From Takakia lepidozioides (taxonomy: Eukaryota; Plantae; Bryophyta): a stretch of 64,000 nucleotides of DNA. Both the position numbers and the translations under genes were made by a program. Within the stretch, counting starts at the first letter, position 1. Each line of letters opens with the position of its first letter. Shown here piece after piece: positions 9,418 to 57,710 of the stretch. The DNA is taken from NCBI GenBank assembly GCA_030704615.1, contig CM060732.1:55490001-55554000 (forward strand), written 5' to 3'. The notes below the pieces were generated by a model that was not told the DNA's origin, searched no databases, and saw only the letters and a program-made list of their open reading frames with translations.

Positions 9418-10170
9418 CTAGTAATTTTTGGAGTTGCAATATAGAGGGGCCGACTCATTGTAAATTATCCAAATGAGTTGCCTTTGGTGACGTGTGTAGG
9501 GCATGCGTGATTTTGTTGGCTGAGCTGGAGCTCTGGTATCGAATGCTGGGACAATGACTTTGGCGGCGGCTAGTTTTAATGGAGTATCATTTAATGTGCA
9601 TTGATGTTTATGATAAGACAGAGAAGGTGGATGGATATGGCACTTGGTGACGGCTAAGTGCTCCTGATGCATGAATTCATGGCGTTTGATGCTTATGGAG
9701 AAGCGTAATGAAGGCTCTGCAGCCTGATTCCAGGCCTAATTGCCATGTGCATTGGCGGCTATGTCTTCACACTGGAAATGTGGCTGGAATTGAATGAGTC
9801 CAGGGTGTTTTGATGCTTCTGGACCTGCACATTGAGGGCTATGCAGCCTGGCATCTGAAATTTAGGTCTGATTACCAGGCTTTTCATGCGCAAGTGCAGC
9901 TGGATCTTCGGTGGAGAGGCTTTTCCCTTACCTTTGGACTGGATCCCCAGATGTAAGGGGGCTAGTGATGAAACCATTCCAGCTCCTCCTGATACTGCAA
10001 TGAAGAAGAGGCTGTGGGCACTCCTGCTCCTCCCACTTGCTTCCTGGTTCTCTACAGCTCCATTCGGTGGTTCTCCTCTTCCATCTCTACGTCTAGCCTC
10101 ATTGAGAGTAAGGTGAAGGTGCTGCGCAGTGCAATCGCCCCTCAATTGCACATGGAGAGGTCATGGAAAT

Positions 10171-10434
10171 GCTCTTGTTGATCTCTGCTCCTTCCATCCT
10201 GGTTTGGCGATCATTATCAGTAGTGTCAGCCCCACGCTCACTGCCGGCAAGATCAATAAAAGAAATTTTGCCAACGACACGGTTTCCTCTTGAGTTACTG
10301 CCTTCTGCTCTCTTGATAACAAGCTGAAGGATAGCATGAGATCTAGATGACTCTTCATTGGCACCGGTGGAGCCAGTGCTGCGAGCAGAGTTGCCCTTGT
10401 CAATAAACTCCTTCACCACCTCCACATCTGACAC
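10171..10434 (-). pseudogene. Isolated kinesin-13 motor-domain fragment (switch I/II) within a chimeric ORF
   Basis: RSTGSTGANEESSRSHAILQL...GKISFIDLAGSERGADTTDNDRQTRMEGAEINKS is the kinesin-13 switch I/II signature. Flanking residues of ORF 10099..10620 are unrelated to kinesin and there is no P-loop. Confidence 0.9.
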
Positions 10435-10633
10435 TAGGTCCGAAGATTGGTCTGAAGAGAGAGCAAGTGCAGATGGCAGCTGCCCACCAGGTTCTGACAG
10501 AGTATCATCAGAGCTTGTCCCTGCATTAGGGATGGCTCGAGTGCTTGCATCACGGAAAAGAGAGCCTAAAACTGCACGCATACGTTGATGGTGTTTCAAA
10601 CAGTACACCTTGGTGGCCATTGGTAAGGGAATC

Positions 10634-15482: not shown

Positions 15483-18167
15483 ATAACGAGAGCATATATG
15501 GAGTAAATGCTGGCCATGGCACCAACAGTCGACTGTTTGATATAGTTGGTAAAGTTGGTTCACCCAGGGTGAGGTGAACAACTACCACAACAGTCAATGT
15601 TCGTGTCAATGTACTGCTATTGTATATTTCTTTCCCTCTGGGTTCTTTGCACTCAATGCACCTCACATGTTAGACTAGCATCCATAGGGAATTTTCAACT
15701 GAGTTGTTATTGTCTCGCAGCTTGAGGTCACTCCCTTTTTACTTGCCCCAACATCAGTTGATGACGATCAACAGGATGTGTCGGCTGGTCCTTCAGAGGA
15801 GAAGACAGTACCACCGGCCTGCTTTACTCAAGTGCTAACAACTGCCGGACATGCTTATGCTTCATCAGGGCACCTCCCTTTGCACCATCCGGCCATTTTA
15901 TCCTGCTGCTTAAGAAAGGAGGGTAAGTGGTCATTCCCTCCGGCCCAGCCCAATCGAAGTCAATAAAACAAACTTGACGCGTAGTCAAATTCACCATTAT
16001 GTTACTGAGCCGCACATCACCACGAACAGCCCTCAACTTCAATATGTGGACTTGGTCCAGGGCTGCCCCAACGCATGCTTTGCATTGTTCCCATTCGTGG
16101 GGAGCCATCTGCTTCTTCGCTAGTTATGAACGTACTTCACCCAGAGGAAACCACCCTTCACCAACAACCAAATACTGCATTGTTATGGTCTTCCAATCTC
16201 CGGGCCAAGCAGTAACACTGACTAATTCAAGGGCACATCCAGCAAAACACCAACTGCGGTGTACCGCCTCACCATAGCGCTGAGAAAATTTGACAATCAC
16301 CGGTTTGCCACCAGACTCCACAAAATATACTAGACACTGTCCTACTCGAGTAACTCGAGCCGGAGGATATTCTTCTGCTAAGTGATAGGGCCAGCATGCT
16401 ACCGAAACCCTTTTCCTGCTTGTAGTTATCTGCAGTCTGTCGTAAAACGTACGAAGCTCCAACAACAGCTGCACCAAAGCTCTAAGTACTCGAGCCAAAT
16501 GCTCTATGTACCGCTCATCAGCCAGCCTAAAGAGATGCAGACTAGCTGTTAGCGGCTCAATCACTGGATGCTTATGAAACACCGCACCATTGATGCGTAT
16601 ATGCGGGCCAACAACCTCAATCAAAACGATTGGGCAGCAAGATGAAAGATGGGAAGTTTCTGCAAGACTGGCCCACTGCGCATATGGTGTAAGGTACTCT
16701 GCATAATACATGCCAGATTCCATGTAGGCATCGCCAGTTAAATCACATTCTGGCTTGACTTCTATAATCGCAAGTAGTTGGTTCCCGCTGAAGATAGCTG
16801 GATCTAGCTCCTCCATAGCAGGGCGCCCTAGTTCTTTCACTTCAAAACGATCAGGATGTTGTATCTCGAGGATTTCTTGTATGACCTGTACCAATTGCTT
16901 TTTGCGGCATTCCTTAGAAAGAAAGTACCCTTGCATACTACACAATGCCTCCACGGCCTTCCAACAATTTGTTGAAATTTCTTCTTGTCCATGCAACTGG
17001 TCCCGAAATAATGCAAAATACCTATGCGCCAATTGTATTGGCATACCAGTAGCTAAGGCTAGGCGATGGTTGTGGAGCACTGGTCCCCCTGAGGACTCCT
17101 GCAGCTTCCACATAGTTTTGTGCTGCTTCGCAGCTACTGATGGCGAGATCTTAGCATCCTAGAACCGTCGAATATGGTCTGCTTCGTCGGTCACTGTGGC
17201 AGAGACCCCCCCCAAGTAAATGAGACAGAGGTTCAGCAACTATCCAATTCTGAGCTGCATTATCTGATAAAATCGAATCATACGGCTGACCTATGTCCCT
17301 CTGAAGGATATGCTATCTGAATAGATACATACCTGCCTAAGAAGTAGGTAGCTCTTCTCGCAAACAAGCCAATAGAAGCTCGTCGGTTGGAGGGTCCTTG
17401 TCATCGACCGCCTTTGGATCTTCAGGAGACATGCCCATGATTGCAAAGGAAAATTGCGCAGCAGAATTAACATTCTCTCAACCCCCTCCTCTGCCATCTC
17501 GCCTATAACCAGCACCTCCTCCTCCTCTTACACTGCTCTGCTCAAACCTCGACTACCGAAATGGGTCTACGAATGAGTCACCAACCCCACACACTCTCCC
17601 TACTTATCAACACACTTTTGCTAATTTCTTTGCTAATCTTGGATCTTTTTTTTTTGTTCATTTGCATGTTTTGGGATCCTTCGCTGCTATTTCATGGTTT
17701 CTTTTCTCTATTTTTCAGGACAAAAAAAATCCCTTCTTGATGGTGAAGGAGATAGCTAGCTTTGGCGCCCGAGGCCTCTTTCAATGTGAGCCTGCAAGGT
17801 GCGGATGTTTGAATTTGTATGTGCGAGACGATAGGTTTGATGAGGATACCAAGGAGCTCATGGATGAAACTGTACTGGCCAGTATAGATATTCACTCAGT
17901 CTGGCCATACCAATCAGGGTTCATTTCTCCCAAGCTCGTTGCAGACGTACCCCAACTAATCCTCACACCCACTTGTTCACTATAGCTCCTCATGTGACCT
18001 ATGTAGTGATCATTGACACGAACATTGACTATTGTGGTAGTTGTTCACCTCACCCCAGGTGAACCGAACCAACTTTACGAACTATATCAAACAATGAAGT
18101 GTTGGTGCCATGGCCAGCAACAGCTGCTCACTCACCCCCCCCCCCCCCCATAGATGCTCTCGTTAAT
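15483..18167. repeat. ~130-bp inverted repeat pair (15483-15611 / 18011-18167) flanking the CRN-like gene
   Basis: TGCTGGCCATGGCACCAACA...GGTGAACAACTACCACAA.AGTCAATGTTCGTGTCAATG matches the reverse complement at 18011-18119; the match extends to GCTCTCGTTA past a poly-C insertion. Confidence 0.85.
15824..17460 (-). pseudogene. Crinkler (CRN)-type REase-fold + protein kinase-like effector pseudogene
   Basis: PD-(D/E)xK-like LDPAIF...IIEVKPE..GDAY.E..YY, then VKFSQRYGEAVH, RGDVRLSNIM, FIDFDWAG...YP...WPDG. ORFs 16124..17113 and 15824..16108 are in the same frame across one TAA; another TAG at about 17160. Putative GT-AG intron at about 17196-17332. Confidence 0.8.
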
Positions 18168-33459: not shown

Positions 33460-34089
33460 TTAAACAATGCAATACTTTCGGCCGATTTGATAAGAGGGAA
33501 AAACAGGGTGAAATGTGTTGAAGAAGGTGCCTTGATTAACAGTGCCTGATTTGATCAATTGTGCCGCTGCTGCTGCGGCTTCCAGTTGACCATCTACCCA
33601 TGCAGGTTTCTTGTACCTATCTTTCCACATGGAATCATAGGTAATATGGAGCTTGAAATCCGGCCCTACCGGGGGGATATAAAGCTCATCGTCTTCCACG
33701 GTGGGAGGTGCGGTCTGGAGGACGCCTGCTGCGCTATGCTGCAGCGGTTGACGCATTTCCATGGTTGCTGCCCCTTTTGTGTCCGCCTCGACATCCCTGA
33801 CATCTGAAAACTTCGTTGCATTCTCATGGGTGAGTGGAAAATCCAGGTTTTGAGGGTGCTGTAGATGGATACGAGGATGCGAGATTGTAGCGGTTGCCTG
33901 GGTTGTCTCGTAGTTCATGTCGAAAGACTTTGATGTAGGCATATTTGACATTTTCTTTGGAAGTTGGAAGAGCGTATTGGCGGCGAGAGAGTGAGGCGAT
34001 AGGAAAGGAAGGATTCTATGAAGTCTTGAGGCTTGCTCGCAAGCAGTAGGTCCAAATTTGAATTTATTGTTTCTCCACTGTTGGTGCAT
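33460..34089 (-). CDS. Hypothetical 209-aa protein, divergent from the FLASH-like gene; paralogous fragment at 1.2 kb
   Basis: ATG-initiated ORF; coding-frame conservation with 1203-1373; may be truncated after FPSY. Confidence 0.45.
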   Translation of the reverse strand: MHQQWRNNKFKFGPTACEQASRLHRILPFLSPHSLAANTLFQLPKKMSNMPTSKSFDMNYETTQATATISHPRIHLQHPQNLDFPLTHENATKFSDVRDVEADTKGAATMEMRQPLQHSAAGVLQTAPPTVEDDELYIPPVGPDFKLHITYDSMWKDRYKKPAWVDGQLEAAAAAAQLIKSGTVNQGTFFNTFHPVFPSYQIGRKYCIV

Positions 34090-34335
34090 TGTGTGTCTCG
34101 CGGTTCAATTGACCAGACGAAACAGAGGTCGGCACTCATGGCTGATACTTATGAAGATACCGTGTCTTCTCTGGAGCAAGAGGGTCTTTTCTCTTTTACT
34201 CTTCCGTAGCCCTGGACAGCGCCCCGGACTTTAATCCTCACAGGCGCACAACGCATCCTTTGTGCTAGCCTTCTCCCTCCCAGACACGTCTTTGACAGCT
34301 GCAACGAAGGAAAATAGATGCCCACAAATGCTGAA

Positions 34336-34344
34336 AAACCCTAA
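34336..34344 (+). promoter_or_regulatory. Telo-box AAACCCTAA in the divergent promoter
   Basis: Exact motif 64 bp upstream of the ATG at 34408. Confidence 0.55.
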
Positions 34345-34407
34345 CCTTAAAAATAATTCCTTGGCCTCGTCCGCTTTCAACTATCCATCTGTTGCACCAT
34401 AGTCGCA

Positions 34408-36975
34408 ATGTCAGGTGCTCTGTTGTCAAACACAATACAAGGAGGAGGTAATAAGTGCAGTAGCCTCCTGGCCATTCGCCTGCGTGGAGCCGAGCCTCTG
34501 GGTTCGGTGAGAATCTCGGTATGGAACTGTCTCATATAAAAGAGGGAATGCATCAACCAACGAGGATGGTTTTTGGCATTTGCATGACTGCAGAGGAGGC
34601 GGACTTTTTATACAACGATCTATACGAGGATGTTGGCGGGGGCAAGCAATTGCTGAAGACTTCTTTGCAAGAGGTGTGACTGCTTGCTAAAATACACTGG
34701 TGTGGTGTCTGTTAAGGGAAAGAGAGAGGAAAAGAGACCCTTTGTATTACCTCTCAGAATTGTGTTACGCCTAGCCCTGGGCATAAGCTTGTCCTCTGTT
34801 GATTAAGGCCACCTCGAGGAGCATTAAAGAAGAACTGGTGAGAGAAGTGCAGTTTAGCTTCTTAGTTGTATACCAATTGTATGTCGAGTGACAAGTGTGG
34901 GGTGGGTGTGAAGTCTCATATACAACAACCCAACTCTTGGCATTTTATCAAAGAACCATCTGGGGAATCGTACAAGTGGTGTCTAGCATGGCAATATTGT
35001 CCTATCCATTCTGCTTAGCTGGTTATGGTAATATGATGCTCACTGAGGCAGAGTGGCGAGATACTTCCAGAACCAGACCTGCACCTTTCTCTCGCATGAG
35101 CAGATTGTGTGTCTATTCACTGTCGGCACCAGCATGAATCTCTTAGCATACATATTGATGGCGGGCCCATTGGTAAAGTTAGGAAAGGTGCTGAAGTTTG
35201 ATGGCTTGCTGGTTCAGATTGAAGAGCGACTTGAGACCTTCAAGAAACAGGAGGCAGAATTGCAAGAAAGAGTGGAAGCTTTGCAGAAGGAGGTGTGGTT
35301 CAGTCGACCCCATTATCTTGATCTCCACTGTTTCCTTTAAAGGTCTTGAATGTTACAAAGCATTACAATGTACTTGTTTTCTGGTGTTTTCCAGTGCGGT
35401 CATCTGATCTAGATGATCCGGGAAGTTTGTTTCAGTGATAGTGTTTGTCTTCACCCTTGTTCTGGAGTACTTAGATTCTTCTGAGAATATTCTAGTTAGT
35501 GAAGTGAAATGCGTGACTCACACTAGGAGTAGCAGTCAAAAGTGCCTACATCCTAATAGGAGGTACTATCACTAGGTGCTCGCTCTGGGCTATCATTCCT
35601 CTTCTGCTAGTACCATGTGGGTCTCCAGTAGCATGTGGTTTGTGTACTGATTGGCTGGAGGTGGTTGTCAACAGAATGAGGCATTGCAGCAGGGCAAAGC
35701 TGTTTTGATTCGCAACATTTCTTGTCTCTTCAAGGCATGTCATACCTTACTCCGGAGATTCCAAGTTAATATGCTTGATCTTGGAAGCATGTTTTGGCTG
35801 GCAGCTTTACCAGTACTGAACCCTATTTGTACTTCCCAAGCAATGATGGATATTGTCACTCGGGCATTTTGCCAGGGACCTCCAGGAGCTCCATCATGTT
35901 AGCTGAGAAATGCCGAACTATATAATTTATGAGTTGCATTCATTGTAAACTGAAAAGCCCCAAGGTTGGCAAGCAGCCCGAGTAGCACCGGAGAACGAGA
36001 AAGAGTTTTCCAGCCGACCATGCATAGCCCAGGCATAGCATGATTATTGATCCAAGAGAAATTTGGGGAGGGAGAGGATGGGTGTAGACTGGAGAGAGAG
36101 TGCCGGGGTTTGGGCCCAAGGGTGGACTACATTATTGCAGTGTGCTTGTTTGCAGCATTGTGGTAGTTGTGTAAACTCACATGATTGGGTATGTGCTTGT
36201 GTAAGGGAGAGCAGACAGCTCAGATGGAACTTGCAAGGAAAGACAAGCAGATCAAAGAGCTTCGTGATGAGTAATTTCCTGTCATTCCATTCTCCCTTCA
36301 ACAAACATGTCCCTGCTCTGCCTCTCCCCTACAGTGATAGTGCAATGACATCCACTTGTGTCATGTTTTCAGGACTGGTCCATGATCGCTAGAATTAGCC
36401 GAGTTTCAGTTTCATGAGTATCCAAATTTAGCAGACTGGATGAGGGCTCTAAATTGATGGGGTGAATCGCTAAGGACCTGAAATTGATTTGGCTCATAGG
36501 TTTTTCTCTCCTCCTTCTCTTGTCCCTGATGTGTACCCATTTCCAGCATATTAAAACTGCCCTGGAACCCACTTGTTGGTGAAAATTCACATATATCTAC
36601 CGAATGATCTAGTTGTAATGTTGGTAAATCTGTTGGGGTGTTTTCAACCTTCAAAGAAGGCCAAGTTGGAGCACCACTACTGTCTGTTGCCCAAGGTCTT
36701 GTCCTCCATTGTGGACAAGAATAAACATCATCACCACTTTCCTTTGTAGTTACTGCAAGAAGATTTTATTGGTCTTAGAATCCATTCACTTAGCTAACAC
36801 CTAACTGCAGTAGTTACAGCTTCATTGGTTGATTCTCAGGCTCAATGGGCTTTGGCAGGAACATGCGACTGAAGATGAAAGACGCACCAACAGATCCCAG
36901 TCCCTCCCACAACAAAAGGGCAGAATACCTCGCAACTACAGCAAGTGTGGGGCAAGATATAAGGCCAACACTTGA
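34408..36975 (+). CDS. FLASH/CASP8AP2 N-terminal-domain-like coiled-coil protein (~137 aa); exons 34408-34414, 34594-34673, 35218-35292, 35675-35734, 36215-36270, 36840-36975
   Basis: Phase-consistent exons give MSEEADFLYNDLYEDVGGGKQLLKTSLQEIEERLETFKKQEAELQERVEALQKENEALQQGKAVLIRNISCLFKTAQMELARKDKQIKELRDELNGLWQEH...; intron 4 uses a GC donor (AAG|GCATGT). The last exon is less certain. Confidence 0.75.
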
Positions 36976-38163
36976 GAGGAGTAGTAAATGCTGGACTCAG
37001 GCATGCTTGTCACGGAGTCATCAAGCTCTTGATAGGGAGACAGACAGTCGCAATGGAGGAATGGGGGATCCCCGGCAAGGGCTTGGTCATGATAGAAGGC
37101 CCCATGAAATTGAAACCTTTAGGTGTAGACAGGATGAAAACCATCGGCACTTTGATGATAGTAAGAGGCAAAGGAGTTTGAGTAGTGATGGGATCTACAG
37201 CTTTGAGGGAGTTAGACATACGAGACCAGAAGAAGGGAGAGGAAGTGGTTCCAAGGGCACATGGCAGGCAAGAAGACGAAACAGTGAGTCCAATGATGAG
37301 TTTCCAAGAGACAGGGACAGAGTGAAGGTTTCCAGGCAAAAAAGGTAGTACATGCTATTGAGATAATCTTCGTGCTCTCTCTCTTTCACCGTGTCTCTCA
37401 TGTACTTATTAAGGAGATGACCACATCCCAATGGACCTCAAGTGGGGAAGAGATAAGTGCCGCCACCATTTAGAGCTCAAATCACAGAATCTGCAAAGCA
37501 AAATGTCTGCTCTTTGGCAGTTTAGCATTACACATCAACTCTACACATCAACTGTCCTGTCCCTTTCGAGATGCACTCTTTCTGTGCACACCTGCGAAAC
37601 CTAGAACCATGGACTGGCACTGCATCAATAGAAACCAGGTAAATTCCCCTCTAAGAAAGAACATTAGCAGGACACCCAGATTCTGGTGGCTTCCAATTTT
37701 GTTTCTTTTCTTTCTTACCCAGGGCAATCAACACTGCACCACCCTAGAGTTGCTAGTAGCCCTTTTAGTACAACCTCCCTGAGGGTTGTCCCATATCACA
37801 TAATAGAAAATAGAAAATGGTTTAACATCCGTCAGAGCGTGTCTGGGGAAGTTGTTCAGTGTGGGGAGGAAGAAGAAGACAGGGATCTGATGTGCAGTGT
37901 GCAAAATGAGGGAGTTCGGGAGGGAGGAGGTTGAAGATGAGGCAGAAGAATTGCATAGATGAAGAGTTCTGGTACTGCTTGGGGTCACAGGTGGTGAGAT
38001 CGAGATGGGGCTATTGGAGCTAGGGTTCACAGCAGTTCTTGTTAAGATCTGCACAGGAAATGCAATGACAGAGGAGAGGTAGAGAGAAGGAGAGAGATTG
38101 TGGGTGCTGCAGGTCTTTCGTCAAAGGAGAAAAACCTGATCCGGTGGATTGGAAGAGGTGAGA

Positions 38164-40317
38164 ATGACCTCAACGCTGGCCCCCGGGCTTGCCCGGAAGT
38201 TGAAGAAGGTTCTGGAGACGCGTACAGATTCGCCCGAGTTGCTGGCATCTCTTGGCACACTCTCTACATTTTATGTAGAGAATACACTCCAATCCAGACG
38301 CAACTTGCGAGCCACGATCGAAAGTCGTGGTCTCTCTATCAATGAAGAGTTTTTGAGAGCCTCAGAGGCAGCTCAAAAGGCTCTGGATGCTGTAGAATTG
38401 GAAGTCGCTGGCTTGGCAGAGTGTTGTGACAGAATTGCGAAATCTTTGAGCAGCTGCAGCGGTACAACGAGCGAGATAGTGACGGCGACTGAACGGCTGA
38501 AGCAAGAACTGGAACACAGCACACAACGTCAAGATCTCATTGCCACTTTTTTGATCAACTATCAGCTCCGCCCTGAAGAGGTGACCTCACTACGAGAAGA
38601 GGATTTGAGTGAGAACTTCTTTAAAGCACTGATACGTGTCCAGGAAATTCATGCCAACTGCAAAGTGTTGCTACGGACGCATCACCAGCGGGCGGGACTG
38701 GAGTTGATGGACATGATGGCAGTCTACCAGGAGGGAGCTTATGAGCGGCTATGCAGGTGGGTGCAGGCCGAATGCCGGAATCTGGGGGATAATGATACTC
38801 CTGAGGTAAGCGACCTGCTTAAGACTGCTGCTGGATCCCTGAAAGATAGACCTGTGCTCTTCAGATACTGTGCTGAAGAGGTAGCTAACACACGGCACAA
38901 TGCCTTGTTTCGGAGATTTATAAGTGCGCTCACGCGGGGTGGGCCTGGAGGAATGCCAAGGCCTATTGAAGTGCATGCACACGATCCGCTGCGCTATGTT
39001 GGGGATATGCTTGCCTGGCTACATCAGGCACTGGCCTCAGAGAGGGAACTATCTATGGCACTTTTTAGCACCGATGCTACCTTGGGCACGTCATCACGAC
39101 GGTTTTCTACAGAGGCTTCCCAGCTAGTGTCGACAAAATCAGGTCGAGTCTCCAAGGAATGGGAATCAGAGGGTGTGAAGACGGAGGGAGATATGGCTTT
39201 TGTGCTAGATCGCGTGTTTGAGGGTGTTTGCCGGCCCTTTAAAGTGCGGGTGGAGCAAGTGTTGCAATCACAACCTAGCTTGCTACTGGCATTCAAACTC
39301 AACAACCTTCTTGAGTTCTACAGTCACACCGTGTCCGAGTTGCTAGGTCAGGGTGCAGCCCTGTCGGTAACAATTAGGGAAGTGCGGGATGCTGCCCAGC
39401 GCACTGTGTTTAACATTATGAAGGGCCGTGGGGACAAGCTGCTGCGATACCCTGCCGCCGTTGCTGTGGATCTTTCTCCCCCTCCTGCTGTTGCGGAGAC
39501 TGTATCACTGCTGCTGGAGCTCATTGACAACTATGAGAGCATGATGGTGCCCGAAGGCAGCAAAAAGCCAGATTTTGAGCCTGTGATTGCAGCTACTCTG
39601 GACCCCCTTATACAAATGTGTGAGCAGTCAGCTGAGGCTTATGGAGTCAAGTTATCAGGTGTCAGACGCAACAACAGTGGGCTCTCAGATTCTGGGCGCA
39701 GGCTTGGAGGCTTGTCGTCCTCATCAGTGGAGACCACATTGGATGGCAGCTCGATGTCTCTTTCTGCCCTGGGAGTACTGACAGTCCGCACAATATTCTT
39801 AGTGAACTGCCTGGCGGCAATTCAGCAACCATTGGTAGTTTACAAGGTGGCAGATGCTTATGTCGGGTCTCTGGGTGCAAGGATTGAGAGCCACGTTGCT
39901 GCACTAGTTGACCAAGAAGTGGGCATAATTCTTGAACGGTGTGGGCTTCAGAAGAAAGTGGCCTACATCAAGGATCGATTGCTGAAAGGCACGCAGCCCG
40001 AAATTGTGTTGAAGGAAGAGGAGAGCGACGAGGACAAGCCAATGGCAGAAAGTGATGGGATGCACCCCGCTGCTGTATCAGAGTCTCTCAGACTTTTCTT
40101 TGGTCTTGTGGCTGGGAATGAAGGGGCTGTCCCTGAGTTTGAGCAGATACAGGTCCCACAACTAAGAAGTGAAGCATGTGTGCGTGTGGCAAGAGCATTA
40201 GCTGATTCTTATAAAGTTGTGTACAATGCGGTGTCAGATCCCGCCAGTGGATACCCTGAACCCAAGACCATGCTCCGGCATTCTCTGGAGCAGATGAATA
40301 CTATTCTTGGACTATGA
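38164..40317 (+). CDS. COG6: Conserved oligomeric Golgi complex subunit 6 (717 aa, intronless CDS)
   Basis: LAPGLARKLKKVLE start and RRFISALTRGGPGGMPRPIEVHAHDPLRYVGDMLAWLHQALASERE are COG6 hallmarks. First ATG is at 38164 (the track start at 38149 is TTG). Likely 5'UTR intron at 37639-37722. Confidence 0.96.
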   Translation: MTSTLAPGLARKLKKVLETRTDSPELLASLGTLSTFYVENTLQSRRNLRATIESRGLSINEEFLRASEAAQKALDAVELEVAGLAECCDRIAKSLSSCSGTTSEIVTATERLKQELEHSTQRQDLIATFLINYQLRPEEVTSLREEDLSENFFKALIRVQEIHANCKVLLRTHHQRAGLELMDMMAVYQEGAYERLCRWVQAECRNLGDNDTPEVSDLLKTAAGSLKDRPVLFRYCAEEVANTRHNALFRRFISALTRGGPGGMPRPIEVHAHDPLRYVGDMLAWLHQALASERELSMALFSTDATLGTSSRRFSTEASQLVSTKSGRVSKEWESEGVKTEGDMAFVLDRVFEGVCRPFKVRVEQVLQSQPSLLLAFKLNNLLEFYSHTVSELLGQGAALSVTIREVRDAAQRTVFNIMKGRGDKLLRYPAAVAVDLSPPPAVAETVSLLLELIDNYESMMVPEGSKKPDFEPVIAATLDPLIQMCEQSAEAYGVKLSGVRRNNSGLSDSGRRLGGLSSSSVETTLDGSSMSLSALGVLTVRTIFLVNCLAAIQQPLVVYKVADAYVGSLGARIESHVAALVDQEVGIILERCGLQKKVAYIKDRLLKGTQPEIVLKEEESDEDKPMAESDGMHPAAVSESLRLFFGLVAGNEGAVPEFEQIQVPQLRSEACVRVARALADSYKVVYNAVSDPASGYPEPKTMLRHSLEQMNTILGL

Positions 40318-41381: not shown

Positions 41382-41827
41382 TTTCTGTTCTCGGGAGTCG
41401 TGCGAGAGACAGATGGGGAGTGCGAAGAATGCCGCTTGTGAGGGTTTGAGATCCGGACCGGCTGCTGGGCCGGTAGTGCTGACTGGTGACCGACGGTGCG
41501 AGGACATAGTGACTGGTACCCGCCGGTCGTGTTGACTGGTGACCGACGGTGCGAGGTCATAGTGACGGGTGGACGACGGTCGTACCTACCGGTGATAGAC
41601 GGTGTGAGGGCGTAGCGACCGGTGACGTCCGGTTCGCCCGGTGCATGTCTTCGTCTGTGAGTCACTCTGTTGCCTCTTATCATCTTTTCTGTGTTTCTTC
41701 TGCGTCCAGATTTGTCGGCCTCACGAGCGTAGGTGCCAACTCCCTGCGGATTCCTTTCTCTCAATTGAGGACACATCGTTCAAGTGTTGGATTCATTGAA
41801 TTTGAGTTTTTGAGAGTCGTTCAGGCC

Positions 41828-44800
41828 ATGGCGGAATGGGAAGAGGTACTGCAGGCCTCCATCATAGGCCTCATATTTGCTTTCATGGTGACAAAGCTTG
41901 TCACCCTCATAGTGTCCTTTCGCGGGGGTAATTTTCGAGTGGCGCGTGGGGATGGTTCTGCCGTGGGGTTCATTGCGGAGCCCGAGTTGGCCCCCGAAGA
42001 GCTCAATTGCTCCTTTGTTCCTTTGGATGATGCAGCAGATTCTGATGTGTCTGCAGAGGATTCAATTTCTGGCCATGATTCGGATTCTGGAACAGACATT
42101 CCTTCTGTGTTGGTTGAAAATGTGGGGGAATCTGGGCTTGACCTTCAGAAGGTCGACAAAGAAGATGATAGGATAGGCATTTCTGGCGATAAGCATGAGG
42201 GAGCAGAAGATAGGGTTGCATTCTATGGTGAACATTCTTTGAAAAAAATGGTAAGTTATGACCATCTTCATCCTTGTTACTCAAAATCTGGTGTATCAAT
42301 TGAAAATTTGAATTTGACAAAGCTTACTGACGTTCAAGTACACTCAAGCTACACATTAGATACTCCTTGGAGTATGGAATTTGAACCTTTTCAGTAATGA
42401 GATGTTCAAGAATGACTGCATGAAACCCTCGAATATTTGGTGAGGGTCGTCAGGTTTAATAATTTGGTCTGGATGTGAATTTGCCCACGGTAGGTTGCTC
42501 CTGGTTGGTTAAAATCAGCCACAAAAGTGGCCTGAGCATATGTAAGGGACTAACCAGGCTTGCTTCCTTGAATGGATGCTCCACAGAGCTTAATATTGGG
42601 GTGATGGAGCTTAGGGTAATGGACTGATCCTCTAGGCTGTACATTAGGTTTACCTCATACACTGAGGATATCGAGAGGCAGAACTGCAAACACTTAAGGA
42701 AAACTTGCAAACCTGATCACATAGGATTGCAAACTTTACTGCAAGACAAGTATTGAAGTTGTGTAAACTGGGGAATCATTACTGGCAGATTCAAGGAATG
42801 AGGAAATTCATTTGGTGGATGTGCCCTGTCGGCCACCAGGATAGGGATATTTTCCCTATTCACGTGTGAGTTGTAAGACTCCTGTGGGAGTTTCTGGCTT
42901 CTCACAGATGTTTGTACATGGACTTAATCATGTCCTCCCAGAAAGTGCAACTTCAGATAACCCTAGGGTTATAGACTCACCGGAGCGCCTGTGCAACACA
43001 CCTGGATCAGATTGTGCAATGCTGAATCTGCCCTGTGCATTGAGTAGAATTGGAAATAAGTACTATTTTCATGCAGGGCATCTGCTCAAAAGCACGATTA
43101 CCTTTTGAGATGCTTGAAGTGAAGGTTTCAATCAAAAGCCCTCTCATGTAAAGTCCCTGTGACTGTGTGTCTTTGGAGGTCATGTTTGTTGGATAGGTTA
43201 GAAAATTAGGTTGCGTATGGATCAATAGTTCAATGTCCTCAAGGATCCAGTGAGGGATTCAAAAGCTTCTCTTCTCTTATAGAGAGGCCTCTGTGGTTGA
43301 GAGAATTCTGGACAGTACAAGAGTATTGGTCCGAAAGCTGCAGTTGTGAAGAGGACAAATGACTTTCAACCATGCCCAGTGTCCCTTGGTGGGGCTCTTT
43401 ATTGGTGGCTTAATGTGTTGTTGTGAGATGCTGGATCACAAAGGCTGTCAGAAGAACCTTTCTAGCATCTAGAGTACTAAGAATTGACTGTCCATCGACT
43501 CTAGGATATATTATTTCATACGAAGAATCTGGAAGCACTGATTTATAGGTAAAAGTAGTTGTGTTTCTGGAAACTGCATGATCTTGTGGAGTGCCTTTCT
43601 GTGTTCTCAGCTGATGATTACATCAACTGCTTTTTTCCGCAGACTGATGAAGCACATATGGATGCGGTTGCCATGAAAGAGGTTGAGGAGGGGGAGGATA
43701 CTGATGAGTGGGAGGGTGTGGAAAGCTCCGAGTTAGAGGAACTCTTTGGGGCAGCGTCATCTTATGTTGCATCCATGGTGGCATTACCTGATGTGAAGCC
43801 TTCAAGCGATGCCATGCTCCAGTTGTATGCTTTCTATAAAATTGCAACGGAGGGACCCTGCTCTACTTCTCAGCCATCTCCTTTCAAACCGTCAGCCCGT
43901 GCCAAATGGTATGGAATTGACTCTTGTACCTCTTTAAATGTCCTGTAAGGGTTGTACTACTTATGAGGAACACTTGAAATTGAGGAGGTGCAACTTGGCC
44001 ACCAGAGAAATATCAGGAAGACTCGTATTTGCAAAGCAAGCTATCTTTCAAGCCTTGATCTTAGAGGGTTTGCCTTTTGTCATACAATTTCATTGTTGGG
44101 TTACAAGTTCATCATGGTCATCTACTATTATGGGTATCGGTCAAGGGGTAAAAGTAGAGTATGCGGTGACAGAGAGTTACACTGGCAGGCTCTGAGAGCG
44201 AGATGATAAAGGAGGGGGCCATTGTGGTGGCATATATTGTGCAAGGAACGCTTGGCAGAAGCTGGGCAACCTGGCACCAGAGGAGGCCATGCAGGACTAC
44301 ATAGCTGTCTTGACGAGTATAAATCCCACCTGGCATCAAGGCGTCCAAAAGGTACCAACCTTTAGACGCTGCCTTTTCACTTCTATCTGTCTTGCCCCTC
44401 CCTTGTCTCTCTCCCTTTTGCTCTCCCTTTTGCTTTCCCTCTTTCCAGGGCATAGCAAGAGGTAGAGGGGAACCATACCAGTCCCCTCCTAAATCCATTA
44501 AAGTTTAACCTGGAACTTGAGTATCTATGGGTCTGCAGTATGTTAACCACAATCAGCGCTCACTGAGAGAACCTCAATATGGCTGAACTTCCAGACAAAG
44601 AAACCCCCTGAGGAGAAAATGGAGCAGACGGGGGCAAGCAGCTCGCAAACTAGTGGTCAAATGGGTCCAGTTTTCAGCTCACTGGCAATGAGCGAGGAAG
44701 GTGTTGAAGAGGAGGGGTGGGTTCTCATCTACTGGGCTTCTTGTTGTTATTTGAAGTCAATATGTGGAGTGCTGTCTTTCCAGCAAACTGTGTGTCACAA

Positions 44801-47504: not shown

Positions 47505-50500
47505 TTAAGTTGGGGTGCCCCTCATCCACTGCCAGTGAGGAGGGCAGAGGCTCACTGGCATAGACCCGTCATTGTCTTCAATTTTAGTATCAGCACCATG
47601 CTGCAGGAGGTGCATAGCAACTTTCTCTTGCTTGGCACATGTGGCATAGCGCAATGCCGTCTGCCCCTTAAAATCCTGCATTCCACAAAGAGCCCAAACT
47701 CATTAAGAGGACTAAATCAACATTTGGTTAAGTTTGCATTTGCATTTGAGGCTGCTTGTCCAGAACTGCTACATCATGATGAAGCTGCAAAAGTAACCCC
47801 AACTTGATGTACTTGACTCTCTGTGACTGCTCTCCCTATTGGTAGAGAAGGCCATAATTTCCAGGGTGACTGTATGGTGAGTCATTCAGCCTGAATATCT
47901 GGCTATCTGGACGTACGTGACAAACTGGAAACATACCCTTTACCTCTGATACTGACTGACCGACTTCATGCCTCTACAACAGTTATCCTCTCTTCACAGC
48001 AATTTTCCCTGGAATAGAAAGGCACACCGGGATGGAATTCACGTAGGGGTTTGGCTTTTAGTTCTTTTGTGATCATTGATGTCGCACTTGTCTGACGACT
48101 TCCAGAAGCATTTGAAAAGTTTTGAATGGGAGGTCAGACTTGAAAAATGAGGTTTACAATCCACAATAAGATGATTGAGAGATCAGGTTGACCTTAGCAT
48201 TGATCTCTGCACCCTTTGATAGAAGAATCTCTACTGCACTCAACTGACCGCAATATGCCGCCCGAATCAGCGGTGTAAGGCCATGAGTATCTGCATAAGC
48301 TCAAGCAGTCACATGTGGCCTTTTAGCATCCACCAGAAACTCCACAGAGAAGCCCACTACTTCAGACAAATCTGAATTGCCCTTCTTCAGAGCAGCACAG
48401 AAATTGGAAATCTGAAACTGAACAATGGGAGATAAGATTGACAACCGCAACAGCCAAAGCCAAAGTAAGTGCACCAGCAAGGCAATGCCCCTTCCTACAG
48501 CTGGGTGAGCCATGTCACTAAACCCAGAACAAGTGAACAACATATCCAAGATTAGAGGGTTACGGTTAGCAGGTACATGGCAACTACTCTGAACACTTAC
48601 ACCTGCACAGAATGCTCATGCGGTCCTGGGTCTGGAACCAGGAAGGGCAGGTAGGACAAAAACTTGTTCATCTCACTTTACTGACAAGTTGCTACCAGCC
48701 ACAACTCACATTGATTTGATGGCTTGTTTACCACATGATTGATGATGGTAATCTGTTGGATGCTTTGGAATACTGACACAAATCAGTTATCCCTACTTTA
48801 GGCATACTATGACCAACAGGAGGTGTCAGGAACAACATACACTGAGGACCTCAAGTAGATCCACTGTAACTGGCCGTTTCGTCAAAAACCATTCCCAGAT
48901 TATACCCTGGTGTGGAGCAAGCTTACCTTTCAGATCAACTGGGATGCCCTTACCCAGGAGTTGGCCAAGGCCCAACAGGTCGCCCTTTTCGGCACACACA
49001 TGAATTTCCTCCATACTTCTGCCAAGCCACAAGTGCGAGCAATGTTAGGTCGAACTGATTGCAGCTGCACTCTTTGGAAGACACATCATTCGACCTGATT
49101 AGATGCTTTCAGAAGTCGGGTGATATTATAATCTGTGCCCAGCAACCAGCCTGAGTACATTGTGGTCCCCTGTCCTCAGCTCACAAGAGGTCTGAGAAAT
49201 CCCTCATTGGCTGCCCTACCCCTTCTAGTTTGACTCGCAAAAGTCGTCTTGTCATCACACTGATTGTCTTCCAGAAGAAATGAAACTCCAGACAGGGACA
49301 TAATGGATCAAAAAGAGTCAACGATATGAACACTGCAATAGAAAGAATCTCACCCCTCATCATCAACACCTTGTTCTGGTGAGCTGAAAACTGGGCCTTT
49401 CTGATCAAGTAGCTGTGAGCTGCCCGAGCTCTCCAACATCTCCTCGGGTAGCTTCTTGCTCTGAAAGTTTGCGCAGGCAACACTGGATTTACTCATTCAA
49501 TTTCCTTTGTGATCTCTGTTGATGCTAAACAACTGCAAATCCTACTGGGTTAAGGGCTGGCATGAGGGAGGGAAACTAGTCAAAATGAAAGGAGAAATTA
49601 ATTACCTCCACAGGAGACACCAAGGGCCCGAGGTACAGAAGCGGAAGGACACATGAGAACCATAGAAAGAAAACAATAGCGCCACACATTTGAACTACAG
49701 AAACCACAGAACCCAAAAAGGCTCAAAAGTGCACAAAGGCAGAGCACCTAATGCAGGTGAACTGCTAGGGATTGCTCTGTAAAAGACACCAGTATCTGCC
49801 CTGGATCTGCGACAGCGAGGGCGAGAGATTGTACTCATAAGACGTTGTTTGCCGTAGCCTTGTGGCCATTGACCCCGCGCCCAGTTTGAGCGGGAACAAA
49901 AGGGACAGAACCTACCTCTGTCAGGGGCTGACGTTGGTAGTAAGACTTACCTCCATATAAAGAATTAATCCGGGTTTTCCAGATATCCTCTAGAAATCCC
50001 TTCACACAAGCATCAATCTGCTGTGTGTGATTTGCCCAAAAACTAGGCCTCAGGAGGGCCTGGGCTTTTGGCTCAGCCTCGAGACTTTCAAAGTTGGTAA
50101 ACAGGGATACAGGCACAATTCCCTTAATAGATTTGAAGAGAGCGTCTCTTTGGTGAGAGAACCCCGGACAGTGTATCAGAAAATGAATACTGTCTTCAGA
50201 TTGCCCACACAACGGGCAATTGCACTCTCCCTTTCCTCTCTGCTTCTGTTTGCTGTTCAAAGGTAGGCTTCCTGCCCTGAGTTTAAATTTCAGTCTAGTG
50301 CCGAGAGTGGGTAGACCCTTGAGGTCATCCAAGATGTCCTCCCCCATGTCACAGACTGGAAACAAGTTCAGGGAAGTTTTCTGCCTAACTTCATTTTCAT
50401 CAGACAATCTCATGGCAACAGACATGGCTGAGGACACTACAGCCTCTAAGTCAGATTTATCCAGCAGGGTCAAGACTTGCGGATCCAGGTCCAGGTCCTT

Positions 50501-53500
50501 GAGGATGTCTTCTACTCTCTTCTGCCAGGACTTAGCCTGTTTGACAGGGCGATCCTGTTTCCAAGATATAGAGTCGATTAATTTAGGATATCTGGTGTTG
50601 GGCATATGTTGCAGCTGACCCCACCATCTGACCTTGAATTCATCTCGTCGGGAGCTTAAGGACGGAATGCCAAACTCACCCCGAACAGCCACATTGGCTG
50701 TTTTGGAGCATGCTGACATACACTCCTTAAGCACCCCCACTTGAATGGATTCTAGAGACTTAGCCTGGTTGGAGTTATCAACCCATATAGCAGATCCGTA
50801 CTCCAAGGCAGGTCTAATAACGCGACAAAGCATGGTTTTCTTAACCTCAGAGTTGACCCCTCTGCAGTGGAAAAATTTAGTGAGCCCCAGAGCTTTGCCC
50901 TTGCCAGTTTGAACAACTTTCCGGATATGTGCATCCCAATTACAATTGGAGGAGAACTCAACGCCCAGGTAAGTGTAGGAAGGGAGGATCTCTTGGCTAC
51001 CCCACTGTTAAGATCACTTCCTCCCTCTCCTCTGTCGTTGAATGCTACCACTGCACATTTGCTGACATTAGCCTCTAGCCCCCAAAGATCAAAGTATCTC
51101 TTCGCGCAATCAATCAACTCCTGGAGATTGGTTAGAGTCTCCCCTATGCCTGCGAAGTCATCCGCAAACATAAGGGCTGGTATGGTGGTATCACCCACCC
51201 TTAACCCAAATCCCTCACTTTCCACATCCTCGAGGAGTTGATTGGTGAAAACATTGAAGAGCAGAGGGGAGAGAGTACATCCTTGTGCTACACCTTGGTC
51301 TATGTCAAAGAAGTTGGACTTCTGTCCGTTAACAGTGACACAGCTTTTGGTGTGAGCATACAAGTTGTGGACAACTCTCCACATCTTTCCCTTGATCCCA
51401 CAAGACCAGAGGCGGAACCATAGGCCATCTCTCCACACTGTGTCATAAGCCTTTTTGACATCCAGGAAAAAGACATAAGTGGGTTTCCCTTCTTTTTTCC
51501 TTCCCTGGATAATCTGGCTTAGAGTGAAGATATGATCCACACAGCCCCTGTTTCGCCGAAAGCCAGCTTGGCCTTCGTGGAAACAACCTCTAGACTCCAG
51601 ATCAACCTCGAGACGAGTACTTATAACTCTGCAGAATGTCTTGCCAACAGCATTGAGGAGCGTGATGCCACGGTAATTCCCCGGTTCTTCTCTGTCACCC
51701 TTCTTGTATAGATTGACAATGACCCCCTGTCGCCAGCGAAAGGGGATCATTTCAGTCTGCGAGGGCGAGAGAGATAGAGAGAGGAAGGACATGATGAAAA
51801 AAGTGAAAAGGCAACCTTCTAAGGTTGATACCTTTTGAAGGTCTTCATGCCAGGTGGGATGTATACCCGACAAGACAGCAATGTAGCTCTGCATGGCCTC
51901 CTCCGCAGCCAAGTTTCCCAGCTTCTGCCACGCATTCCTTGCACAAATATACGCCACCACACAGGTCCCCTCCTTTATCATCTCGCTCTGAGAGCCTGCA
52001 ACTGTAGCTCTCCGTCACCGCACACTCTACTTTTACCCATGTGAATGGTATCCACAGTAGATGCCAATCATCAGCTCAAACCCAGATCCACAATCTAACG
52101 ATAAATAAGGGTACTGAGTGTGCAGAGTTCTTCTGGAGCCTAAGTTGAAACAACCCTGGGTTAAACCACAGGCCAAGAAGAAACTTTCATACATAAACTC
52201 AAAGCATGCATAAATAGTTCACTTCAACAACATCTGTCCTCATGCAAACAAGATTAGACTTACTACCATTTGGCACGAGCAGCCGGCTGGAAAGCTGACG
52301 GCTGAGGGGTGGAGCACGGCCCCTCAGTTGCAATTTTGTAGAATGCATACAACTGCAGCATTGCATCACTTGAGGGTTTCACAGCAGGCAATGACACCAT
52401 GGATGTTGCATACGATGATGCCGCCCCAAACAGTGCCTCGAGTTCAGAACTTTCCACGCCCTCCCACCCATCGGTGTCCTCCCCCTCTTCAATCTCTTTC
52501 ATAGCAGCTGCATCCTCACCTGCTTCCTCACTCTGCGACAAGGGTGACATATGAAAAGACAGCACCATGGAAACAATATCCGACCCATGAAACAACAAAC
52601 AGGACGGGTTCAATCAGATGGTTGACCTGCAAGATACCCAAGTAAACTAGAAATGTTTAGGTTGACCATTCACTATATAAAGTCCACAGGACCTAACAGA
52701 CCACGTCTGGTCCATCAGCACTACAACAGCTAGGCTATGTGGGACATGTCAGACTCAAGGAGACCCATCAAATTCACTCCTCATGTCCAGCATTATCTTC
52801 ACTTTACGTACTAAGTGATTCTTAAATCTCCTAAAAGAGGTCCGAGTGTGGCAAGACTATTTACTTATGGATCTGGTACCACCTTCGAAACAGAAGGTAG
52901 TATAGCCATTTGGGGTGAAGTGACACCACAAGTTACGCTTGCTTCGGCAAGAGTCTTCCCCCTTTTTTTTACTTTTCGATCTGGCTTTGGTCAAAAGGAT
53001 TTAGATCAACGAACCATATTGAATCACACGTGGATATCAATTAAAATTTATGTGCAACTGGACAGTGGCGAGGGTGAGAAGCCCTATCATGGTCCTTCCC
53101 CATCCAAAGTACTGGGAGCCTGATTTTGGCAGGAAATGCATATCGATCTTTCGAATTTCTATCTAATCTGCAATTGAAGAAGTTTTGCAAGCCAATTTAT
53201 AAGTTTCCTATATTTTGTATCAAATAGGTGCAGATCTGCACATTGACATCCTTCAGTGTGGCGTCCAAAACCTCATATGCAGCTCCACAAGGTCAATCAT
53301 GTCCTGTAGGCAAATGTTTATTGGCTCCACAATCCGAAATATAAAGGTCAAGGCAGCGCCTATCCAAGAAAGCACTGCTGGCTACTACCTTAGAGGTTTG
53401 CGTCAGGCTCATTCACCGACCAAGGTATCAAATCCGGTTGGACTCATTTCTGAGCCACTGAGAAGAGGTTTAGCTTATCCATTTCTGCGATTTCTAGCAG

Positions 53501-54248
53501 AGACTCCATGGAGATTGTGGTTCAATAATTGTTGGTTATGGCGAAGATTTTTTTACCGCAATCCCATGGAATACTTGCTGGAACCCGTCGTGAACGATTG
53601 AGATAGAATTCTCACATATTCTAGTGATATTTGAATGTCAGAGGCTAGTCAATTCAACCATCCTGTGAAGAGAGGTCGTGGGACATAAGTCGACGAGAAG
53701 GCAACACGTTGAGCTCGACTGCGATTTGACGCGTAAACAGTATCCAATCCGAAGTATTGCAAAAGGTGCAACCTCGTCAAATTTTCAAGTGGCACGGAAG
53801 GATCCAGGATGTGAAAACTCACCAATAATTGCAAAGACCGTTCACCAGAGACTCCAACCCTGTCGTCCACTCCCTCGTTCTCATCGCTAGGAATTGCTAC
53901 CCTCTCATATCCTTCTTCAACCTTCTCAGATCCAAGCCCCGAGGCGGCCACATCTTCAACCAAACCAAAAGGAATGTCCATCCCAGACTCCGACTCATGG
54001 TCATCACTATCGTCCTCCTCCTCAGATGCATCCGATTCTGCCTCATCCAAAAGAACAAACGAGGCGTCCAGCTCTCCGCTACTAGCCAATTCCGGCTCCG
54101 CAATCAAAGCCACGGTAGCATCGTCCCCGCGCGCCACGCGCAGATTCCCCCCACGAAAGGACGCTATGAGGGAGTAGAGCTTTGTCACCATGAAAGCAAA
54201 TATAAGGCCTATGATGGAGGCCTGTAGCACCTCCTGCCATTCCGCCAT
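47505..54248 (-). CDS. ACBP: Acyl-CoA-binding/ankyrin protein, copy B; exons 54248-53823, 52532-52267, 51937-51832, 49460-49354, 49018-48927, 48290-48193, 47675-47505
   Basis: Same intron positions and mostly identical exon lengths as copy A (266, 106, 92, 98, 171 nt); open frame throughout. Confidence 0.9.
49829..51758 (-). mobile_element. 5'-truncated RTEX-like LINE (RT + C-terminal CCHC) in intron 3 of ACBP copy B
   Basis: KKGDREEPGNYRGITLL, QAGFR, FLDVKKAYDTV, GVAQGCTLSPLLF, LMFADD, CPLCG..EDSIHFLIHCP; 14-bp TSD GCGAGGGCGAGAGA (49815-49828, 51759-51772); one frameshift. Confidence 0.93.
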
Positions 54249-57200
54249 GGCCTGAACGACTCTCAAAAACACTAGCTTCAATAAACCCACCCCTCGATGT
54301 ATGTGTTCTTCACAATTCCACGAAGAAATCCAGACGAAGGTCCTCAACTCCGAGACCGAGAAATCTGGAAGAAGAAGAAGAGACACGGGAAACAGCGACG
54401 AGAGCAACAGAAGTGACGCAGAGAGACAAGAGGCGCACACACCCAGCAGCCTATCCGGGCCCATCCCCCACCTCACCGGCCGTCACCGGTCGCCTAGTTC
54501 TTCCCGACCGGCATTCACCGGTTTCCGCGTCCTCGCACCGCCTATCACCAGCGGTATCAACTGGTCCGTACGCCCCCTCACCGTTGGTCACCAGTCAGGA
54601 CGACGGGATCCTACTCTGCAGTAGCAGGTTCGATTCCCGATTCCTTCGTTTCCAGGACCCTCAATCTGAGTGTGAGATCGTCGTCTACCTTCCCCGAGTA
54701 CCACCTCCTTGGATCTTCTTTCTCTCCTCATTCAGGGGGCGGGTGGTCTGGGCTACTTACATGATACACAGCCCCACGGGAGTTGCAAGCTGCTCCATTC
54801 CATACCCAACCCTCTGATCGTCCCCACAACGCTACCTCTCTCCTTGCAGCTTCTGTCTTGCTTCACACGCTGCTTACTCACTGCCAGCCAACTGCTTCTT
54901 CAACTCGGCTTGATTACAAAGCAGGTTATAAGCTTATACAATCTCCGACCTTCTTCCGTTCAGATCTCAGCTCCCATGACTATGTTATAATTCACCTCTA
55001 CAGTGCACACCAGGGGCCCATGAGTGTGGAGCAGCTCAAATCATGATGAGGCACTGCTGTGAGCGATGCCATAGCCCCGTGACCGATCCCTCTGCTTATT
55101 GCTTGATTACGAGATCGATGGATCCCTGCGGTTGCTGCACAGCAGAGACCATAACAGCGATGCATCGAATCCACTCTTCCCACATGTACCTACACAGTGT
55201 CTGTGTGTTGGTGCAAAACTGTCTCAACACATTTCCTTTGTGGAGTTGTTTCGTTGATGGGTCCGATCCTGATGGGCGACATTGAAGCGTACCCCATGAG
55301 ACTTGTGCTACACAAGATTACTCACACACAAATGTGTCACCTTTTGTGTCAACCTTCTTCTATATTTGCCACGTATGTATACTTTTTCTTTTTTGCACCA
55401 TAGGGTTGAATTTGTTTCTGTGGTAAACTGATTTACTTTCTATAGGTACGGTTTCAGAAACCTGGCCCACCCAATCATGCATACTGACTGCATTATCCAT
55501 TATTAGGGCACTTGATTTACAGGCCCAATATACTTTAAATCAAGAATTACAGTCCACCGCCACCCTGGATTATCGTTACGAGCTTTCAGTAACAAAAAAC
55601 TTTATGGCCCTTGAGTCTTGGGGTTTAATTTTTCCCCATTCAAATAAAGTTCAGGGCTTCATCCCTTTGCGAAAAATAAAAAAATAAAATCAGATAACCA
55701 TATGGACAGCCGGGGTGTGAAGCCTGATTCCGGCGCTATGGGTTTGTTCCCCTTCCTCTACCAGACTTAATCCTATATGGGGAATGTAGTCGATAGATGG
55801 GCTTGGCAGAGAAGACAGAATCTCACGAAGAGGACACCACGGACTCAGACTTCCAAAGCATTGTCATCCACCCACTCAAGTACACTGTTACACCCAACGT
55901 ACGCTCCCGTAAGACCCAAAAGCCACCACCCTCACTACCACGGCATAGAGGCTTAAATAGTATTAGGTCATAATGTAATCCTAGTGCCGCGTGGCACTTA
56001 CATATAGGTCCACCGGATGCCCTTCCATCATAGCCATAGAAAGAAGCCGAATCACCCATACCCATCCTAATCTAATCCTAAACCAGCTGTTAGAATAAGA
56101 CAGCCCCTAATAAAGTCATCAGCTGTTGCCAGCTCATCCTCATGCGCAAGGTCTAAGTTCATCCAGACTTCATCCTGACTCCGTCTATCCCTAAATCATC
56201 CGGAGCGCATCCCTCCTCCATTCATCCATGTTGAAAAGGAAGGTGAGAAGAAATCCCAGCTCCACATATGTGAAGCCAGTTGGGGCCACAAGAAACTGCG
56301 AGCTCCTGCGAGTGATGAGCTCAGGAAGAACAAAAATGAAGCCTAGCCAAAACAAACTACACACCCGGCACACAAGAAATGAAAAAACCTAGGGAAGAAA
56401 ACCTCACCCTGCAAGCTGGGTAGAGGACAAAACATCCCATAGGAAAAACCCCAAGTGCTACAATTGGTGTAGAAAAGTAGCACGAAATTCACAGCTTGGA
56501 TCTTAGCTGGGTCAGGACTGATGCCAGTAGCAGAAAGTAGATGGCCCAAGAAATGGAGTTGTTCCATACAAAAATCACACTTCTTGGCTTTAACTTTAAG
56601 CCCGGCTGCACGAAGTGCACACAACCCGTTGCAAATCCAGCAGATGAGCATCAAACGTGGTAGAATAAATGTTGATGTCATCAATGTAAACTAATGCACA
56701 CTCCCAACGAAGGTTTCCTAAAACAATGTCCATAAGGCGCTGAAATGTAGCAGTGGCATTGCAAAGACCAAAAGGCATGGTTTCAAATTGGAAGAGGCCC
56801 ATCCTGTAAGTGAAGGCTGTATTCTCCTTAGCAGCAGCAGTTAAAAGAACTTGCCAAAAGCCAGAGGCTAAATCTAATGAAGAGAAGATAGTGGCCCCAT
56901 TAAGTTGATCTAGCGTTTCATTGATGCATGACAAAGGGTAGACAACTCTCTTTGTGATGGCATATAAACGCCGAAAGTCAACGCAAAAACGGGTTGAGCC
57001 ATCCTTCTTATCCACTAAGACTATGGGACTGGCCCAAGGGGATATGGAGGGGGTGATCACACTAGCATCAAGCATCTTGGTAATCTCTTCCTGAATGACT
57101 GTAAGCTCACGAACACTCTCCCTATAAGCATGTTGTTTGATAGGCTTACCATCCGTGATGATGTCATGATCCAGAAAGGTGGTGCGGCCTAAGTCATGGA

Positions 57201-57440
57201 GCTCTTTACTAAAGATGTCGAGATTGTCAGGTGCAGGCGATTAATCTACTGAGGAGCAAGATGATCACCCACTTTGATATCATTTAAGACCTGCTGGAAA
57301 TGTTGATCTGCTTCAGGAGTAAGCGTGCCTTTGGCAGTGGAGCCAGAGTGAGAGACAAATGCCTGGAGTTGGTCCACAAGGGAGTCCACCAGTCCAATAT
57401 CATGAAAACTGAGACCTTTCTGAACAGAGGCCAACTCAGA

Positions 57441-57710
57441 CAAAGGAGAAGCAGTGAGCCTAGCAAAGACCTGACCCTTGCGGACACTAATGCTAATACG
57501 TTCTGGATTAGCAATCAGTAATCTGACCACTCCCTTGAATCCCCTGTCTAAAACCCCAGAAGCAACCATATAGTGTTTTTGGAGGGTAAGTTTTTTCCAG
57601 TCCTCAACCTCAAGGAAATGACCTGTAGGGCAAGCAAAAGCTAAGCCTGTAGGTACTATGCGCTGAGAAAAAGCAGGGATGCTGAAGTCAACTGGAGAAC
57701 GTAGCAACAG
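57441..57710 (-). other. Degenerate dUTPase-like domain between protease and RT
   Basis: SIPAFSQRIVPTGLAFACPTGH...SGVLDRGFKGVVRLLIAN...VRKGQVFARL follows the trimeric dUTPase pattern VPTGL / GVIDxDYRG / KGDRIAQL. Confidence 0.75.

Follow-up and report, generated by a model that had tools for sequence, protein, structure and literature searches.

In animals, FLASH connects the cleaving enzyme with histone mRNAs. Lsm11 is a U7-specific protein of the Sm ring and, to our knowledge, the enzyme complex that makes the ends of plant histone mRNAs lacking poly(A) is not yet known. The closest described counterpart of the gene reported here is the N-terminal domain of human FLASH (CASP8AP2; PDB 6ANO, 6AOZ, and 6AP0), in which L118 and I119 are needed for Lsm11 binding and K129 and D130 form a dimer ion pair (PMC5636114). 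In Drosophila, where the U7 snRNP of the animal system is proven, the LDLY motif of FLASH reads LDIY, showing that a change in this motif is tolerated, and an N-terminal fragment (residues 1–178) restores processing in depleted extracts (PMC3884669); a minimal FLASH can therefore suffice. Stem-loop histone mRNAs without poly(A) and SLBP were described in March 2026 in green algae, Physcomitrium, a fern, and a cycad (PMC13130582); the same paper reports the loss of this pathway in angiosperms and Selaginella and leaves FLASH, Lsm11, and the U7 snRNP unmentioned. Lsm10 and Lsm11 have been reported in land plants in a preprint (bioRxiv 10.64898/2026.10.14.759114), which also reports FLASH 'widely outside metazoans', its text giving neither a plant example nor an architecture and naming only Rozella for a U7-like RNA outside animals. 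A literature search for a paper on plant FLASH returned nothing beyond this preprint, whose figure or supplements might hold a plant FLASH.

The window (the whole 64-kb stretch of DNA analysed) contains an expressed, spliced, and conserved gene for a 254-aa homologue of the FLASH N-terminal domain, which does not qualify as a complete animal-type FLASH. The transcript evidence consists of assembled contigs of two public runs that cover the stretch; their RNA status is a guess, yet they are spliced at GT/GC-AG sites. The contigs of both runs cover the exons and skip the introns, and contig depth cannot quantify intron retention. The main features are as follows.

33679–33829, plus strand: exon 1, comprising the 5′ UTR, the ATG, and one base; joint found in both runs; 33679 is the start of the contig rather than a mapped 5′ end
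33830–34593, plus strand: intron 1, GT-AG, 764 nt, phase 1; contains the telo-box (34336) and a previously proposed micro-exon (34408–34414)
34594–34673, plus strand: exon 2, residues 2–28, with the acidic L-Y-x-D-L-Y motif, candidate counterpart of FLASH LDLY; spliced contigs, motif in all relatives
35218–35292, plus strand: exon 3, residues 29–53, coiled coil; spliced contigs, 75 nt in relatives as well
35675–35734, plus strand: exon 4, residues 54–73, RNISCLFK motif at its end; spliced contigs, PDB alignments of relatives
35735–36214, plus strand: intron 4, GC-AG, 480 nt, phase 0; relatives have a GT donor here, and the probable algae lack the intron
36215–36270, plus strand: exon 5, residues 74–92, with R81, K82, and D83; spliced contigs, top PDB match FLASH (E 0.73)
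36859–37481, plus strand: exon 6, R/S/D-rich tail of 162 aa, TAG stop at 37346–37348, and 3′ UTR to at least 37481; both runs

Five spliced joints (33829 to 34594, 34673 to 35218, 35292 to 35675, 35734 to 36215, and 36270 to 36859) were found in both runs, and the exon phases are compatible across the gene model. Translation would begin at the ATG at 33826–33828, upstream of which an in-frame stop is located at 33805, and the coding parts of the six exons (4, 80, 75, 60, 56, and 490 nt) add up to 765 nt, or 254 aa. The first-pass annotation had also proposed six exons, and its four middle exons, their phases, and the peptides quoted from them agree with the contigs of both runs, as does its GC-AG intron, which is spliced out in both; its first and last exons are to be replaced. 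In place of a 7-nt start micro-exon at 34408–34414, both runs splice 33829 directly to 34594, and the sole contig over 34408–34593 is unspliced (34123–34622, one run). The last-exon acceptor proposed at 36840 was likewise rejected, since both runs and the relatives, whose last exon begins with E-N-x-R-L-K, support 36859, which changes the frame and opens the 162-aa tail. The 137-aa protein derived from the earlier exons was thus wrong at both ends and missed the tail. In the last exon, the RNA differs from the genome by two indels (+6 and −3), which keep the long frame. A telo-box upstream of the gene had been taken as fitting expression in cycling cells; it gives no evidence for this, because it falls within intron 1 of the main form and because the two copies present in 64 kb, counting both strands, compare with about 0.5 expected by a rough estimate. 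A minus-strand 209-aa open reading frame at 33460–34089, considered as a partner gene, was discarded as it overlaps exon 1 and belongs to no Pfam family.

Alternative transcript forms were also observed. The unspliced contig at 34123–34622 runs into exon 2, the frame of which is open from 34464 and contains in-frame ATGs, so that an N-terminally extended form is possible; one relative (L002) possesses an extended first exon of that kind, bearing a second copy of the motif. Contigs lying within the GC-AG intron 4 (35752–36032) were found in both runs, and retention of this intron would stop the frame at about 35900, ahead of the RKD segment. Together, the unspliced contig and the intron-4 contigs suggest intron retention or an alternative start. 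In a second species (L065, 873–1024), an acceptor lying 90 nt early in intron 3 adds a stop, giving an unproductive splice form.

The protein is composed of about 97 aa containing the acidic motif and the coiled coil, followed by a disordered R/S/D-rich tail. As judged from sequence comparison, residues ~54–92 share homology with that half of the N-terminal coiled coil of human FLASH which binds Lsm11 (human residues 100–137). The searches were made with single window exons or with natural open frames of relatives rather than with the joined window protein. When the natural exon 4–5 frame of L065 was compared with the PDB, human FLASH was matched with an E value of 1.5e-5, the next match being at 0.81, and a profile of five natural plant and alga exon 4–5 frames matched FLASH at 1.4e-7, with the next at 0.05; the homology to the FLASH N-terminal domain proposed from the first reading is thereby supported. 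With exon 5 of the window alone, FLASH ranks first of 177,635 PDB sequences, weakly (E 0.73), and the fused exon 3–4 of L042 is aligned gap-free in the same register, extended upstream (E 0.5). PDB searches with window exon 4, exon 2, and two-row exon profiles were unhelpful, Pfam holds no family for any window exon or for the frames of the relatives, and the Atlas searches returned generic coiled coils and unnamed clusters only.

At a constant offset of 47, residues N54, L57, N67, L71, R81, K82, and D83 correspond to human N101, L104, N114, L118, R128, K129, and D130, the human residue numbers and roles being taken from PMC5636114 and the PDB alignments (N114 from a PDB alignment). The two proteins thus share a homologous Lsm11-binding segment in one register, in which N101, L104, L118, R128, K129, and D130 are kept, whereas F72 replaces I119; this position is F in the window and in all plant and algal relatives, and the adjoining L71 matches L118. 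A long helix is also common to both: AlphaFold2 predicted a single long helix (pLDDT 90) for the natural exon 2–3 frame of a relative, a monomer prediction of low information. The likeness might in principle have arisen by convergence between FLASH and an unrelated plant coiled-coil protein, since coiled coils inflate scores, exons 2–3 match generic helices only, and the match to FLASH spans about 32 residues. This explanation, already largely refuted, appears very improbable: the profile match at 1.4e-7 is five orders clear of the next one in a library rich in coiled coils, the shared N-I-S, K-T-A, and R-K-D are not heptad filler, and a DLY motif occurs at the expected distance.

That motif, at residues 7–12, reads NDLY within a doubled L-Y-x-D-L-Y where human FLASH has LDLY. 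The spacing from DLY to NIS, previously put at one residue off the human value, is indeed 55 residues (Y12 to N67) against 56 in human FLASH (Y58 to N114). The match of the motif itself to LDLY is looser than first proposed: a DLY is present at near-human spacing, but its first residue is N, exon 2 alone finds no FLASH in the PDB, and the second tyrosine is not invariant. What is invariant among the relatives is a core of L-Y-x-D-L; the tyrosine after it is replaced by F in L042 and by I in the probable algae. The counterpart of the human tyrosine may for this reason be Y8 instead of Y12, with the motif aligned four residues earlier. A candidate motif matching LDLY is present at the level of sequence, and it is not significant alone.

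In a search of 1.84 billion proteins, exon 4 yielded one match, which in another plant is a chance open frame spanning this exon. The loci of that plant contain exons 2–5, of which exons 3–5 have the same lengths and phases; their intron 4 has a GT donor, and the last exon begins in the same way as the 36859 form. An exon-4 DNA pattern gave 54 matches in metagenomes, 17 of which were accompanied by neighbouring exons; the other 37 lacked a neighbouring exon and were taken as chance. The window gene is closest to a close plant group of eight relatives, including L064 and L065, with identities of 73% in exon 2 (L064/L065), at most 68% in exon 3, and at most 83% in exon 5 (83% to L065); the source plant is probably an early-branching moss. 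The first exon of L064 is likewise ATGG|GT, and the spliced transcript of L064 is L065. The JGI samples from which this group was obtained are presumably Sphagnum-associated. A further plant (L042) lacks intron 3, and eight contigs from Antarctic rock communities, which probably represent green algae, lack intron 4. Orthologues with the same introns are present in other plants, and green algae probably have them too. Compared with another plant, exons 4 and 5 show 10 synonymous versus 3 replacement codons and 7 versus 1, respectively, and the best-conserved part across plants and probable algae is the Lsm11-binding part. Homologue searches with the window tail and with an exon-4 region each gave no useful matches, a search with the tail of a relative (L001) found only close genomic copies, and a locus search with the exon-5 alignment gave nothing useful.

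In total length, the protein differs greatly from human FLASH (254 aa versus nearly 2,000), and its domain begins at residue 1. The tail consists of 16% R, 11% S, and 9% D, is predicted to be disordered (pLDDT 49), and has no Pfam match; the transcript shows no splicing from the tail past the stop and on into the 3′ UTR. In the relatives, which are likewise short proteins, tail identity is low and composition similar. The C-terminal SANT/Myb domain of animal FLASH, which binds NPAT, is absent from the 254-aa protein according to Pfam and structure prediction, because the tail is poorly conserved and has neither a family match nor a fold, and the central Ars2-binding region of the large animal FLASH is also absent, the whole protein being 254 aa. 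In place of these parts, the window protein carries the short R/S/D-rich tail.

Such an architecture could be read as that of a FLASH descendant repurposed, for example, as a general cleavage/polyadenylation adaptor or a speckle protein via the R/S/D tail, independent of histone stem-loops. The composition of the tail, which resembles low-complexity regions of splicing factors, the absence of the NPAT- and Ars2-binding parts, and the departure of the front motif from LDLY are consistent with such a change of role. We nevertheless consider it unlikely, given that constraint, across the range from mosses to probable algae, is strongest in the segment that binds Lsm11, and that mosses do make histone mRNA without poly(A) (PMC13130582). 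The stem-loop/SLBP pathway of mosses, ferns, cycads, and green algae is the one that the window protein most likely serves.

We favour, with a probability of roughly 0.65, the reading by analogy with animals that the gene encodes a minimal FLASH, which would serve as adaptor in a histone pre-mRNA cleavage complex of the U7 type. By analogy with animal FLASH, two copies would form a parallel coiled coil, the C-terminal half of which would bind one Lsm11 N-terminus on the U7 snRNP, and the front motif would recruit symplekin, CPSF100, and CPSF73; the pre-mRNA would then be cut just behind the SLBP-bound stem-loop, as in animals, giving a histone mRNA without poly(A). More speculatively, the R/S/D-rich tail may replace the NPAT-binding module and provide nuclear or condensate targeting, and retention of the weak GC-AG intron, which would stop the frame ahead of the RKD segment, may tune the amount of protein. 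The short FLASH would probably help to make the tail-less histone messages of mosses and ferns.

The U7/Lsm10/Lsm11/SLBP-type pathway suggested in the first-pass annotation is a plausible setting for such an adaptor. Rfam found nothing in the 64-kb window, and a stem-loop pattern scan of the window and of the loci of the relatives gave nothing useful. A FLASH orthologue might also work with Lsm11, SLBP, and cleavage factors in the absence of an animal-type U7 RNA, either because the guide has diverged beyond recognition or because the cut is placed by proteins alone. The Rfam U7 model was run over 3,424 plant genomes, and the text of the preprint that reports this names no plant match (10.64898/2026.10.14.759114), as would be expected in such a case; Rfam models are, however, known to miss divergent small RNAs, and the surface best conserved here is the one that would bind the U7-specific Lsm11, so that this arrangement seems improbable. 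The stronger proposal that mosses and green algae possess complete U7-guided cleavage of histone mRNA, with the FLASH core of ~95 residues, devoid of the NPAT-binding module, as the whole adaptor, appears evenly balanced. If it is true, this core would represent the minimal FLASH of the common ancestor, a U7 RNA should await discovery in plants, and the complex would be brought to plant histone genes by another route than in animals.

The pathway claim is likely to be true and was largely anticipated by the work of 2026, and the surprise is limited because it is already in print that the pathway is not animal-specific. What is new here is the minimal architecture and a defined gene for a knockout test, and the corrected gene model adds to the value. 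A conserved short FLASH would supply the connection so far missing between the CPSF73 nuclease and the side of the pathway formed by the stem-loop and SLBP, and one small gene would serve both as a knockout target and as a bait for Lsm11 and the expected plant U7 RNA. The conserved core also indicates where in the human protein of 2,000 residues the ancient part lies. As the gene escapes Pfam and catalogues based on open reading frames, it may be undercounted in surveys of pathway loss.

The surroundings of the gene differ between species, with COG6 adjacent here and Mo25 beside L064, and a functional gene cluster was therefore rejected. COG6 (38149–40317) is a single intron-less open frame of 722 codons, whose transcript starts by 37895, ~400 nt past the end of the FLASH-like transcript. 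Immediately before exon 1, the segment at 33488–33667 is matched by many contigs of very high depth, mostly with 90–99% identity, in both runs, and contains on the minus strand a stop-free peptide with no Pfam match; it probably derives from elsewhere in the genome, as a piece of a repeat or of a gene family with high expression. At 16124–17113 on the minus strand, a 329-aa open frame with no Pfam match looks, by eye, like the beginning of a gene that is kinase-like or carried by a transposon, and an intron-less fragment of a kinesin motor (9759–10620, minus strand) is probably processed or transposon-captured. Downstream, two similar genes for acyl-CoA-binding proteins face each other (41549–43948, plus strand; 52263–54476, minus strand), the latter followed or interrupted by a LINE-type reverse transcriptase (49835–51981), and an LTR-retrotransposon remnant at 56343–59586 on the minus strand has a dUTPase domain adjoining an aspartyl protease.
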